NCBI RefSeq assembly: GCF_006345805.1 | Contig: NC_043006.1 | Coordinates: 4,526,001-4,590,000 of the forward strand | Reading direction: 5' to 3' | DNA length: 64,000 nucleotides | From: Octopus sinensis | Taxonomy: Eukaryota | In this document: piece by piece, positions 12,601 through 21,600 of the stretch | Layout: each line of letters starts with the position of its first letter | Position numbering within the stretch: the stretch's first letter is position 1 | Position numbers and translations under genes: made by a program | Notes under the pieces: model-generated | Databases searched by the model: none | Told to the model about the DNA's origin: nothing | What the model saw: the letters and a program-made list of their open reading frames with translations, nothing else

Positions 12601-15600
12601 CAATATTTACATGCTATTATTTTAGGGCTACATCCGCTTTGAGATCCACTGTTTTGGAAAAGAGATGCACATGTATACACACTTGTATTTACAGAAGCAT
12701 TTGGACAACAGTAATAGGATACTATATATATATATATATGTATATATGTATGTGTGTGTGTGTGTGTGTGTGTGGTGTGTGTGTGTGTGTGTGTGTGTGT
12801 ATAGTGATACTTACTTTCACTTGCTCATTAGAAGTAACAGCACAAAAGACAATTTCAGTAAAGCCTTGAGTTGGAAACATCCGGAAACAAATTCCACCAA
12901 TGACTCTATTTTCTTTAATTAATGCCAAACATTTATGTTTCCTGAAGGAGAAAAATAACTTTGAAAAAAAAAACCCTAATTATATCTACCTACTGTTTCA
13001 AGAAAATACAGTTTACAATGTTGCCAATACTAAATATATGGGATTACCAGATTCATCATTATCATTTAACATCCGCTTTCCGTGCTAGCATGGGTTGGCC
13101 AGTTCGACCGGGGTCTGGGAAGCCAGGAGGCCGCACCAGGCCCATTCTGTGAGAGTAGTGGGTGCTTTTTACGTGCCAGGCAAAGCTGGCATCGGCCACG
13201 TACAGATGGTGCTTTTTACGTGCCACCAGCACGGAAGCCGGTCAAAGCAGCGCTGGCATAGGCCACGTACAGATGGTGCTTTTTACGTGCCACCAGCACG
13301 GAAGCCAGTAAAGGCGGTGCTGGCATCGGCCACATACAGATGGTGCTTTTAACGTGCCACTGGCACAGGTGCTAGGGAGGCTGGCAGGATGTGTATATCT
13401 GGTACTTTCTAAAGATTTTTTTCTTTCACATATTATGAAGATAACTACAAAGATCAAAAGAAGTCCAAAAAGTCTAAATAAATTAAAATACATTCAGTTA
13501 TACATCCAATAAAAAAAAAAAAAACTATCCACAACTTACGGGTCAAACACCAGTCTGGTAATATATTCTCTAGGCATTCTGGGTAGTTGGTGGGAGAAAA
13601 CATTCTGAAGACCAATCAACCAGATAAGTTGTTCTCGACTTGGACGTTCAGTGAATGTATTAGCCATAACTTTGAACTCAATCACTCCTTTACCTTCTTC
13701 TTGTCGGGCAATTTCATCACGAGCAGCGTGAGTGGGAAACAAGGTCTTCTGTACAAAAAGCAACTAATCCATATCAGCGTCACCGAAGGAAATGTGCATG
13801 CCAAGAAATTTCAGAAAAAAAATCACAGATAAATTATAGAATTTGCTTAAAATACTGATAAACTCTTAAAGCACTATACTCTAAGTAACTGCAACTGTCC
13901 TGGGTCCTGAGTTACAAGCTCTCTTTCTAGTAAGACAACTGCAGAAGTATTTAGCTAAAATTCAACTGCTGTACTTGGCAACTCTTACCTACAGAAAAAC
14001 ACACAGGTACACAATCTCTTATCTATAAAGCAATGAATTTAGTGTGCAGGTAGGAGTTCATCAAGGTTCAATTCTCAGTCCCCTACTAAATATCATCGTC
14101 CTCCAGGACAAAACAGAAGTTTAAGACTGGTTGCCTATGGAAATTCCTCTATGCTAACGAACTTGTTCCAATAGTTGTATCTGTTGTAGACTTAGAAAAG
14201 GAATTCCAAGGGTGGAAGTAAAACCTGGAATCAAAGAGCCTTAGCAAAATAACTGAAGTTCTATTTAGCAGAAAATAACAGAGAATATGTTAATCCCTTC
14301 AGGAAAGAGGTCCTGTTCCATATGTAGAAAAGGTTTAGGCAGAAATAACATATGGTATAATCAGTGCAACATATAAACACAGAGGTGCAGTGAAATCATT
14401 AAAAGACATAGATGCCCACATGTTAAAGTAACATTCATGCTGTTGTTTGAATTTGTGGATTAATAACCAAATCTCCCTCAAATCTCACAAGAAAGAAATG
14501 ACAATGGATAAGATAGTCCTAGATTTGCGTTGGACAAAACATGTTGCTAAAATTGCCAAGAAGGCTGAGGGTGTCTTGGCATCACTCACCAAGTTCTTTG
14601 TGAGCTGCTCTCCGGCTATCTATCTGTGGCTTTATATAGCTATGGTAAAACCTCACCTGGAATTTGCATCACCAGTCTGGAACCCCTATCTTGCCCAGGA
14701 AATTAATTGTCTGGAAGCTATTCAGCAACGTGCAACGAAGAGAATACCCTCCATCAGGCATTTGCCATATTCTGAACGCCTTACTTCCCTGGGCATGGAC
14801 ACATTGAAACTCCGACGTCTGGCAGCTGACTTGGCAGACACCCATAAAATTATTAACCATCTTACAAACAATAACTCTGAGCACCTTTTCAAACTCCATC
14901 TGTCCAACACCCATGGACATGTTTACAAAGTCAGAAAATAGCGCAGCTCCCATGACTTTAGGAAACATTTTTTCACGCTGAGAGTTGCTGAAGCATGGAA
15001 CAAACTGCCGGCATCAGTTGTTAGTTGTCGGAGCACTGCATCCTTCAAAACTTCCATGCTTCCTGAGATTTGCCAACACTACACCTGATTTTCTCCCCTC
15101 TATACCTGAGCACTGTATACAATAATTTCATTATTATTATTATTATTATTATATATACAGTTTCCACATACGGGAGATATAGTCATGACTAGGACAACTG
15201 TGTATACACCTACTCAGACATAAAACTGCTTTCTCTGTCAGTTTCAACAATGAGACTACGGAAGTATGGTGGGAGCTGTTTTTATCTATATCGATTGTTT
15301 CACTGGAGATGAGACAGTTTAAAAATTAAAAAAATTACTTCTACTGATAGGTGGGGAAATGTAGATTGTTTTAATTCACTGAACTTTTCTGGGCTTATTT
15401 TGTAGTGAATTATAAATAGAAGTAAATGTAATTGTAGCAGAACATAAATTTATTTGTATTTAACTTATTTCGTGACGAAAACGCTGCTATGCAGTCACTT
15501 AGCTTGCTAAAAATAACTGTTAAAACCATTGAATCACATCTTACTGTCCGAAAGGACCCTAGATAATTATAGTCTTAGATATAGTGTCTAGGAATCTTTT

Positions 15601-18600: not shown

Positions 18601-21600
18601 AGCCATGGAAAAAGATCCAAATAAATTGTAATTTCGAGTAGAAGTATTCTTGTTATCGTCCAACAGTCTTCTTGCATTGGACGTATTTTACGTTGGTTCT
18701 GTGTTGGGGGAGGGGAAAGTCTTGGTGGTGATATCAGAAAACAAAGAAAAATAGTCATCAACGATCGAGATTCAACATGGGTAAACTAAAATATAAATTG
18801 CACATCACTAAAGAAAAACTCGGTAACGGAAATTAAAGACAGAAATTCCGTCTACTCCAACAACAAGCGACTGGGAATTATTATTATTATTAAAAAGAGA
18901 TTCCACTAATAGCGCGGCGACATGGTAAACAAAAGCAAGAGATTCGCAGAATATCTCTCTCTACCTGCTTTGTTTTATACGGTTAACAATGAAAAAGGGA
19001 GAAAGCCGGGCCCGAGTCTAGGTTCAATGAATGGGTAATTAATCTATGTTGGAAAAAGGAGGAATTAAATCCCAAATCGGTGGCTGCCAAGGAATGCTGA
19101 ATACTGACCTGCAACTGTTGTAGAGTGGGTAATGCCTTCCTCTTGACGCGATACTGTTTGCGACGCGACCGCTTTTTTTTGCCGAAGACCTTAGACTTCC
19201 TAGCAGACAAGCGCTTAGTGTTCTCCATAGAGCAATCGGTTCGATGTTACTAGTTTTTTTAAAAATAGGACTGATTCTTTTTTACGTATATACTGCTAAG
19301 ACCGTATAGGGAAATATATATATATATATATATATGTATATATACAAATATAGGCTAAATAAGGGAATCAGTCCAAAACACCCATCACCATTTTTGCGGT
19401 TTGGCAACAACAGAAGCAGAGAAACAACCAATCAGATGTCGAGTTCGTCTGTGTCGTCACTTCCGGGGAAACACCAAACTTATTGAGGTTAAATAAAAAC
19501 CAATTTTTAATCTGGTTTTTTTTCCTTAAATATATATTTTTTTAAATCATAAACGCTTGCGAAAATCACAAGAAATGAGAAGTTAGAATATATTAAAGGT
19601 GCTACTGGCGAACAGTCGTCCCGGCGCGCGCACTCGCGTATCCGCGCCAGCTAGTCATGACTAGTCGATCCATACTTTGTGTTTTTGTTATTTACTTTGT
19701 GTTTTTGTGTTTTATTTACTTTGTTTTAAAAAAATTATTTACTTTGTGTAAAAAATTATTTATTTTGTGTTTTATTTACTTTGCTAGGGTAGTCGTTGTA
19801 GGATCGACTAGTCACGACTAGCTAGCGCGATAGCGCGTGTGCGCACACCGGGACCACTGTTCGCTAGTAGTAATATATTAGGAATATATTAAATACGTTC
19901 AAAAGATTATCAAGAGTGTTTACGTTTCTTAACACGAGGAAATTCTTTTCTAAAGCACAATGTGTTGTATTGTTATGGTTACGATATCTATGGTATAAAA
20001 AATTTCCCATTCACCGCTTGATGGAGAATAAGCTATGGGTTTGGCTACTGCAATGCCTACCTTTTAATTAATTAAGAAATTAACGATGCAGTTTCGTAAT
20101 AATAAAAATAACTCCGGTTATTTTTATTGTAGTATTTACCGGGAAGAAATGAGGTTCGAGGCAATAATTAGGGGTCACGTTGCCAAGGGACATAATTATT
20201 ATAATGAAGGAGTCTGTATCTAAGACAACAGAAAGGTGCCCCAGTTTTATTTATCTCGAGAGAATGCGGCACACGAAATGAAATTTACATTATAATTATA
20301 TGACTTAATAATTATATTTATTAAGTGCATAGTTTTCATTAGAAATTGTATAATTTCACAATGTATAAATAAGTGAGCAAATAGTTCACATTATATCGAT
20401 CACAGTAAAATGCGTTTATTTCATGGGTTCTCTTACTCTCTTTTACTTGTTTCAGTCATTTGACTGCGGCCATGCTGGAGCACCGCCTTTAGTCGAGCAA
20501 CTCGACCCCGGGACTTATTCTTTGTAAGGCCAGTACTTATTCTATCGGTCTCTTTTGCCGAACCGCTAAGTAACGGGGACATAAACACACCAGCATCGAT
20601 TGTCAAGCAATGCTAGGGAGACAAACACAGACACACAAACATACACGCACACATATATATATATATATACATATATACGACGGGCTTCTTTCAGTTTCCG
20701 TCTACCAAATCCACTCACAAGGCTTTGATCAGCCCGAGGCTATAGCAGAAGATACTTGCCCAAGATGCCACGCAGTGGGACTGAACCTGGAACCATGTGG
20801 TTGGTAAGCAAGCTACTTACCACACAGCCACTTCTTTTCCTTTCACAATTCCCGTCAAACTGTGATGACGTATAACTTGTGAAGAATTTAGTGTAAATTG
20901 ATTGGATACCATAAAGCAGACAATGTATAATTAAATTTGGAAGATACAACTTCTAAAAATACATATTTGACTTAATTATTATTTCACTATTTTTCGAGGG
21001 TTTTTCTTTTTTTTTTTTTTTCCCTTATTTAATAAATTTGAGGATGCACCACTGAAAAATAGTTGCGTTTTATAAAACTTGTACGTCTGTAATTTCTAGT
21101 GTAGCCTAACTTGAAAATTCTGGTTCATTTATCTGACTCATTTCTTGTAATAACGAAAGAATTTCAAATACAGAATAATAAGCAATTCAAAACGCACCTC
21201 TCGTTTGTGTGCCATTTGGCAGAGGTTATTGAATGCTTAGTTCTACCTAGAATTTACCTAAAAGTATTCAGTGCAGAAGTTGAATAATTTGTAACCATAT
21301 TTAGGTTGAAATATACTGCTTTTGCCTCATTTTAGAAAATAACGAAGTATTTATTAAAATATATTTGACATTATTATATATGTTGTGTTTTGAATATTAA
21401 TTAACAAGAAATTTTAAATAATAATAATGAAATTATTGTATACAGTGCTCAGGTGCACCACAACTTATCAAAAGTGCATATAAAGTATATGCAGTAATGT
21501 ACAAATGTCTGGGAAGTGAACAGTGTATGAGTCAGATACATGCTTGCGTGTGTACGGAGGGGAGAAAATCAGGTGTAGTGTTGGCAAATCTCAGGAAGCA

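Follow-up and report, generated by a model that had tools for sequence, protein, structure and literature searches.

The 64,000-nucleotide stretch of Octopus sinensis DNA analysed here (the window; contig NC_043006.1, positions 4,526,001 to 4,590,000) carries the acetyltransferase gene KAT2 on its minus strand. Intron 9 of this gene, 11,063 bp between exons 9 and 10, contains a candidate alternative first exon on the gene's strand, whose coding part we termed the leader. This exon probably belongs to KAT2: as read from the sequence, an internal promoter would drive it, splicing to exon 10 would follow, and the product would be a short KAT2 in which the histone acetyltransferase (HAT) domain and the bromodomain stand behind an N-terminus with a nuclear localisation signal (NLS). 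On a narrower point we are highly confident, namely that the exon and the promoter-like island around it are real and conserved.

The leader (19109–19228, minus strand) opens with an ATG at 19228, runs for exactly 40 codons and ends in phase 0 at the splice donor CAG|GTCAGT (19103–19108, minus strand). An in-frame TAA (19249–19247) precedes the ATG, separated from it by six sense codons. The first-pass annotation of this DNA had described the same start, upstream stop, length, donor and phase, and all of them were recovered on re-reading; it had also placed no ATG between 19229 and about 19380, and the closest upstream ones, neither of them in frame, were found at 19385 and 19391, with none within 19384–19229. 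The encoded peptide is strongly basic, with 16 lysines or arginines and a single acidic residue among the 40 codons. Relative to the promoter motifs described below, the putative 5' untranslated region (UTR) of the alternative first exon would span 19229–19410 (minus strand).

Taken alone, the combination of open reading frame (ORF) and donor is not significant. Both strands of the window (128 kb) were scanned for ATG-first ORFs of at least 30 codons that end in phase 0 at G|GTNAGT. The pattern occurs three times on the minus strand and not at all on the plus strand, and about 0.26 occurrences are expected in an intron of 11,063 bp. The leader is significant because it is conserved across species.

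With the leader and exon 10 as the query, a single close relative was found, an ENA contig referred to here as L001. Exon 10 is about 90% identical in amino acid sequence between the window and L001. The two genomes have diverged deeply. In KAT2 exons 10–13 the proportion of synonymous differences (pS) is 0.76–0.92, which is saturated, and that of non-synonymous differences (pN) is 0–0.06; in a blastn comparison only exons align and no intron DNA does. A tblastn search with the leader, a check that the first-pass annotation had suggested for cephalopod KAT2 introns, returned a full-length match (40/40) at L001:5490–5609(+), with 28 of 40 residues identical (70%) and an E value of 1e-13. The match lies in the same intron, on the gene's strand and 4.4 kb upstream of exon 10, and it again consists of an ATG, 40 codons and a donor, CAG|GTTAGT, at the same codon. 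The ATG, the frame and the donor, whose loss in a close relative the first-pass annotation had named as speaking against its proposal, are thus all three kept.

The pattern of substitution in the leader is that of a protein-coding sequence. Nucleotide identity to L001 is 58%, and codon positions 1, 2 and 3 are identical in 27, 30 and 13 of the 40 codons, corresponding to a pS of 0.965 and a pN of 0.247. Conservation is absent from the other two frames (6–7 of 39). Residues 1–24 are the best preserved (22/24 identical), and protein conservation ends exactly at the donor, which in both species matches eight of the nine positions of MAG|GTRAGT. These features are characteristic of an exon that is translated, under purifying selection on its protein, and whose 5' splice site is functional. 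Two compositional details accompany them. The pS of the leader exceeds the saturation value of 0.75, and nearly all its synonymous sites differ. The leader has a GC content at third codon positions of 0.65 in the window versus 0.35 in L001, the opposite of the trend in exons 10–13 (0.21–0.41 versus 0.42–0.56), which suggests opposite drift of codon usage or composition at the leader exon.

Given these data, we find it hardly credible that the leader is a random ORF that happens to abut a GT in intronic junk DNA, or a piece of a transposable element. The bare pattern is indeed common enough to arise in such an intron, which is full of repeats. The leader, however, is found at the corresponding place in the L001 intron, although the intron DNA around it does not align. 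Neither the window nor L001 contains a second copy of it, and the 400-bp repeats that flank it belong to an interspersed family and are not a pair of long terminal repeats (LTRs). That L001 is the same species or a contaminant is excluded by the saturation of synonymous sites across all exons.

Comparing window positions 30000–5000 with L001 by tblastx recovers the leader and KAT2 exons 10–13 only; no further conserved segment is seen between exon 9 and exon 10 on either strand. With nothing else found between them, the first conserved coding sequence to follow the leader is exon 10. The leader donor and the exon 10 acceptor are both in phase 0 in both species, and here too the first-pass annotation, which had matched the two phases in the window, is borne out.

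These observations bear on the main remaining rival, a separate small gene nested in the intron. The leader would then be either an unspliced micropeptide of about 42–81 amino acids or the first exon of a gene other than KAT2, with its other exons unconserved or outside the window. Consistent with such a gene, the leader resembles neither KAT2 nor anything else searched and has a promoter signature of its own. In L001 the unspliced frame ends two codons past Leu-Gln, which would give a compact basic peptide of 42 amino acids, and the conserved GTYAGT is readable in principle as Val-Ser codons. On the other hand, the intron holds no second conserved exon on either strand, and the unspliced C-termini differ completely: past the donor the frame stays open for 41 further codons in the window and for 2 in L001. 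In both species a consensus donor marks the end of conservation, and its phase agrees with exon 10. We consider the nested gene unlikely. An exact look-up found no record of the 81-amino-acid unspliced ORF. A first exon of KAT2 joined to exon 10 is the reading we prefer.

Upstream of the ATG, a putative core promoter (19386–19466, minus strand) contains ETS, CCAAT and YY1-like motifs, in this order. The ETS-type motif CCGGAAGTGAC lies at 19466–19456(−) and corresponds to L001 5297(+), where a second copy follows at 5316. The NF-Y/CCAAT-type motif CTGATTGG lies at 19435–19428(−), with the inverted CCAAT CTGATTGGYTGTTT at 19435, and corresponds to L001 5327(+). The YY1-like motif, AAWATGGYG, reads AAAATGGTG in the window (19394–19386, minus strand) and is found at L001 5386(+). 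The motif order is identical in the two species, and the ETS and CCAAT motifs are 31 bp apart in the window and 30 bp apart in L001. Over both strands of the 64-kb window, CCGGAAGTG occurs once, at the promoter, and elsewhere in neither the window nor L001. The composite CCGGAAGTG-N(15–35)-CTGATTGG has one match in the window, as against 0.00 expected from 100 shuffles; in L001 it is present only at 5297–5334(+), just upstream of the leader ORF, and four further loci, from more distant animals, lack it. Alignment of the region upstream of the leader between the two species scores 81.5, compared with 55 ± 7.7 for shuffled sequences. ETS, CCAAT and YY1-like motifs in combination read as a TATA-less promoter.

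The leader also lies in an island in which CpG dinucleotides are not depleted, inside a gene body that in both species is otherwise poor in CpG. The single-copy core of this island (18600–20430, without strand) has an observed/expected ratio (o/e) of 0.9–2.0. The whole island, defined by an o/e of at least 0.9, extends over 16001–21000 and reaches a 1-kb peak of 1.38–1.47 at 19001–20500, compared with a window median of 0.41. As a positive control, the island at KAT2 exon 1 (52501–54500) has an o/e of 0.90–0.99; the island at the leader is as strong. In L001, CpG o/e is 0.35 overall and 1.0–1.4 at 5100–6300, around its leader. The octopus methylome shows methylated bodies of constitutively expressed genes with start sites spared (PMC9476566). 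If the animal of the window methylates its DNA as that octopus does, the island fits the trace expected from a promoter active in the germline. Judged from what is known of such motifs, the composite and the island would together function as a promoter.

A CpG island in an intron that bears ETS and NF-Y sites can also act as an enhancer or drive non-coding RNAs. The conserved region might accordingly have a regulatory role, for example as an enhancer within the intron or as the promoter of a non-coding or unstable transcript, or else be a poison exon that KAT2 occasionally includes, and its ORF would yield no stable protein. Inclusion after exon 9 would indeed bring the in-frame TAA into the message. 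The substitutions, however, are those typical of a translated ORF, with synonymous sites saturated, non-synonymous sites constrained and one frame conserved, and in the window the stretch from the TAA to the ATG lacks an AG acceptor. We regard both versions of this explanation as quite improbable. The missing AG also led us to reject a coding cassette exon for the window.

To define what a first exon of KAT2 would encode, the gene model was examined. The numbering of exon 9 follows the count of the first-pass annotation; exons 9 and 10 were verified, the upstream exons encoding the PCAF_N domain were located, and exons 10–17 were rebuilt independently. Exon 9 (24812–24954, minus strand) ends in phase 0 at ...GGCCCAGAT|GTGAGT at 24812, its peptide terminating in MVGPD. 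Exon 10 (13540–13748, minus strand) begins at the phase-0 acceptor ag|AAGACC at 13748, common to the long and the short form, 18 residues ahead of the crystallised HAT core. Exons 11–17 (12941–12815, 10562–10452, 8958–8815, 6254–6100, 5792–5726, 3172–3088 and 671–478, minus strand, including the TGA stop) hold the remaining HAT domain, the Ada2-binding linker region and the bromodomain. The intron of the short transcript would span 13749–19102 (minus strand; 5,360 nt including the donor), which contains repeats and no conserved coding segment.

The spliced model of exons 10–17 is 1092 nt long, in frame, and encodes 363 residues. With the leader it gives a protein of 403 amino acids, 47.5 kDa and an isoelectric point of 9.7. 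Pfam assigns to it Acetyltransf_1 (residues 98–191, E 2.4e-14) and Bromodomain (306–385, E 1.2e-23), in agreement with the length and the domain content, HAT domain and bromodomain only, that had been proposed at first pass. PCAF_N (PF06466) is absent from the 403-residue product by Pfam and is encoded by exons farther upstream in this gene. The short form would be a KAT2 gene product without the long-form (PCAF/GCN5-L) architecture. Structural matches cover both domains: residues 59–226 match the human KAT2A structure 1Z4R over its full length (E 3.6e-94), bromodomain structures of PCAF and KAT2A align to residues 287–403, and yeast Gcn5 chains (6CW2) align to residues 55–280. Residues 54–401 align with 9ynv_N, a histone acetyltransferase chain of 405 residues for which the search gave no organism. 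Among the matches listed, the best named relatives are KAT2 proteins of a brachiopod, a bivalve and a gastropod, at 72–73% identity.

The conserved residues 1–24 of the leader, with KR-x10-KKKR, fit the pattern of a bipartite NLS (two basic residues, a spacer of 10–12 and a basic cluster), and the pattern is matched in the window and in L001. A pattern search of exons 10–17 found no classical NLS pattern. Exon 9 carries KR-x12-KKRK, and PCAF is reported to have its NLS at amino acids 425–445, just upstream of the HAT domain (PMC9477270); we infer that exon 9 corresponds to this stretch. Because its transcript would start after exon 9, the short form would skip this exon and lose its NLS. The leader may therefore act as a replacement NLS, a point absent from the first-pass annotation. 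A basic leader fits a nuclear cargo such as the catalytic half of KAT2, and this logic, in which the leader serves a cargo stripped of its own signal, argues against a nested gene.

Based on these observations, we suggest the following mechanism. A TATA-less promoter inside the 11-kb intron between exons 9 and 10, marked by ETS, CCAAT and YY1-like motifs and by a CpG island that is probably unmethylated in the germline, would start a transcript whose first exon comprises a 5' UTR of about 110–180 nt and the 40 codons at 19228–19109. The donor CAG|GTCAGT would then be spliced to the phase-0 acceptor of exon 10 at 13748. The 403-residue, 47.5-kDa KAT2 encoded by the resulting mRNA would retain the whole GNAT catalytic core together with linker and bromodomain, and would lack PCAF_N and the exon 9 NLS. 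With KR-x10-KKKR of the leader as its NLS, the short enzyme should still enter the nucleus, resembling a Gcn5 of the fungal type.

Several points weigh against this interpretation. The Kozak context at the leader ATG is weak in the window (T at −3), and a short upstream ORF (uORF) may lie ahead of it. Position +3 of the donor is a pyrimidine in both species (C in the window, T in L001), an uncommon and weaker class of donor. The agreement in phase with exon 10 would arise by luck one time in three. The edges of the CpG island hold young copies of a SINE-like repeat (SINE, short interspersed nuclear element), while its core is single-copy in the window. One relative was compared. Transcription start at this site and the join of the leader to exon 10 are both predictions from sequence. 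Of the promoter-driven short KAT2 proposed at first pass, the conserved coding first exon, the promoter-like DNA and the position of exon 10 as next conserved coding sequence stand on direct comparison, and the splice of the leader to exon 10 is a predicted one.

A further point of this kind comes from protein databases. No leader-bearing protein was found in 5.8 billion clusters or in 1.84 billion representatives, and a HMMER search of the latter with the leader gave 0 matches. Searching proteins with an alignment of two leader sequences likewise produced no candidate. The best match to the 403-residue query is 73% identical, and there is no closer KAT2 among the matches listed; for this reason the absence of the leader from protein databases is weak evidence. 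Among the listed matches to the 403-residue product none has a leader-like N-terminus, the short ones starting at an internal methionine or being fragments. Nor was a similar N-terminus seen in twelve sequences that were read, comprising the shortest matches and those reaching furthest into the leader. A metagenome scan for the start of exon 10, in transcripts or genomic copies, returned no match, and the isoform was not found reported in the literature searched.

In more distant animals the intron itself is different. Four loci (L002–L005) contain no leader. The equivalent of intron 9 measures 0.75–1.7 kb in L003–L005 (9288–10040 in L003 and L004, 6009–7731 in L005), compared with 11 kb in the window and more than 10 kb in L001. 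In L002, exon 9 was not found within 10 kb upstream of exon 10, and that interval contains no leader. L003 and L004 are near-identical contigs from one sample, either haplotypes or a duplication. A short, leaderless intron in distant animals fits a lineage-specific origin, separate from that of the mammalian GCN5 short form, and to this extent the independent origin claimed at first pass is compatible with the data. On balance we favour the view that a molluscan lineage (cephalopods, if the assignment made at first pass is right) invented a dedicated promoter and an NLS-bearing first exon, which turned KAT2 into a locus with two products, the full-length enzyme and a minimal Gcn5 of the fungal type, and that this arrangement was kept across synonymous saturation.

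Three known systems provide points of comparison. The mammalian GCN5 short form (GCN5-S) lacks the PCAF-homology N-terminal region, retains the HAT domain and bromodomain and is like yeast Gcn5; according to the same review, it results from a poorly characterised splicing event and its protein abundance is uncertain (PMC9477270). The octopus form would share with GCN5-S the loss of PCAF_N from a KAT2 product that keeps both other domains. GCN5-S presumably starts at an internal methionine, in the region MLEEE(I/V)YG, so that it would keep the NLS-bearing linker. The octopus form, in contrast, would be driven by a promoter dedicated to it, begin with a new coding exon and carry an NLS-like sequence of its own, and its start point would be much nearer the HAT core, with KAT2 sequence beginning only 18 residues before it.

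Fungal Gcn5 (PDB 1YGH and 6CW2) likewise has a short N-terminal tail, a GNAT HAT core, an Ada2-binding region and a bromodomain, and the sizes are close if the 405-residue chain 9ynv_N, from the organism left unnamed by the search, is set beside the 403 residues predicted here. The N-terminal tails, however, are unrelated, and the fungal gene gives no product besides Gcn5, whereas the short form described here would exist alongside a full-length protein bearing PCAF_N. The third comparison is with deltaNp63 and the mouse oocyte form of Dicer, Dicer-O, N-terminally truncated isoforms that lose a regulatory domain because an internal promoter drives an alternative first exon, which is spliced to a common exon downstream. 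These belong to other gene families, and the KAT2 leader differs in being a conserved coding sequence of 40 residues that fits an NLS. The promoter here is also not visibly derived from a repeat, unlike that of Dicer-O. By analogy, the short KAT2 would belong mechanistically with the deltaN isoforms that arise from intronic promoters.

The role of the metazoan-specific PCAF_N region of GCN5 and PCAF is still poorly defined. If our interpretation is correct, selection keeps a KAT2 without PCAF_N beside the full-length enzyme in at least one animal lineage, which amounts to a natural, conserved separation-of-function allele of the domain. Such a system would allow one to ask what PCAF_N adds, whether in complex assembly, substrate choice or its reported E3 ligase activity, and where and when the minimal enzyme is used. 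For genome annotation, the short isoform would be a missing or easily missed gene model for pipelines to recover.

Some further features of the locus were noted. Within the putative 5' UTR, between the promoter motifs and the ATG, lies a (TA)n microsatellite (19346–19310) that is absent from L001. A uORF of seven codons begins at the ATG of the YY1-like motif (window 19391–19368, minus strand; L001 5389–5412, plus strand). The two sequences, ATGGTGATGGGTGTTTTGGACTGA and ATGGCGGGATTATTGTTTTGGTGA, have TGTTTTGG in common, and in both species TGA is reached after exactly 24 nt. The resemblance may be coincidental, or the short-isoform mRNA may carry a conserved uORF.

The repeat copies near the leader belong to a SINE-like family of about 400 bp, with more than 10 full or partial copies in the window, in both orientations and 79–93% identical (15890–16253, 20438–20835, 37295–37682, 51974–52349, 62929–63187 and others). 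The direct repeats that bracket the leader had been considered as an LTR pair, which was rejected on account of this family. An inverted repeat with 70-nt arms (19602–19671 and 19801–19870, 84% complementary, 129 nt apart) lies within the CpG island, 370–640 bp upstream of the leader ATG, and may be a small foldback element. Elsewhere in the intron, 14447–14941 (plus strand) is an ORF of 164 residues antisense to KAT2. Pfam reports nothing for it at E ≤ 0.01, and we take it to resemble the C-terminal part of ORF2 of a long interspersed nuclear element. A non-coding RNA gene in the intron was rejected: no Rfam family reached its gathering score, the matches below it being microsatellite-driven, and no tRNA was found.

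At the other end of the gene, KAT2 exon 1 (53779–53572, minus strand) is open from an ATG at 53779, in the context AAGATGGC, which adds 69 Ser/Thr-rich codons ahead of the start of PCAF_N. The long form may start earlier than homology indicates. About 250 bp upstream of this ORF, at 54010–54050 (minus strand), a long G-run is followed by an A-rich tract (GGGGGGGGGGGGGAGGAAAAAAAAAAAGAAAAAAAAGAAGGAAAGG). Two more stretches of the window are not depleted of CpG (o/e 0.95–1.14), at 27501–28500 and 60501–63500. The second overlaps copies of the SINE-like repeat and could mark the promoter of a neighbouring gene.

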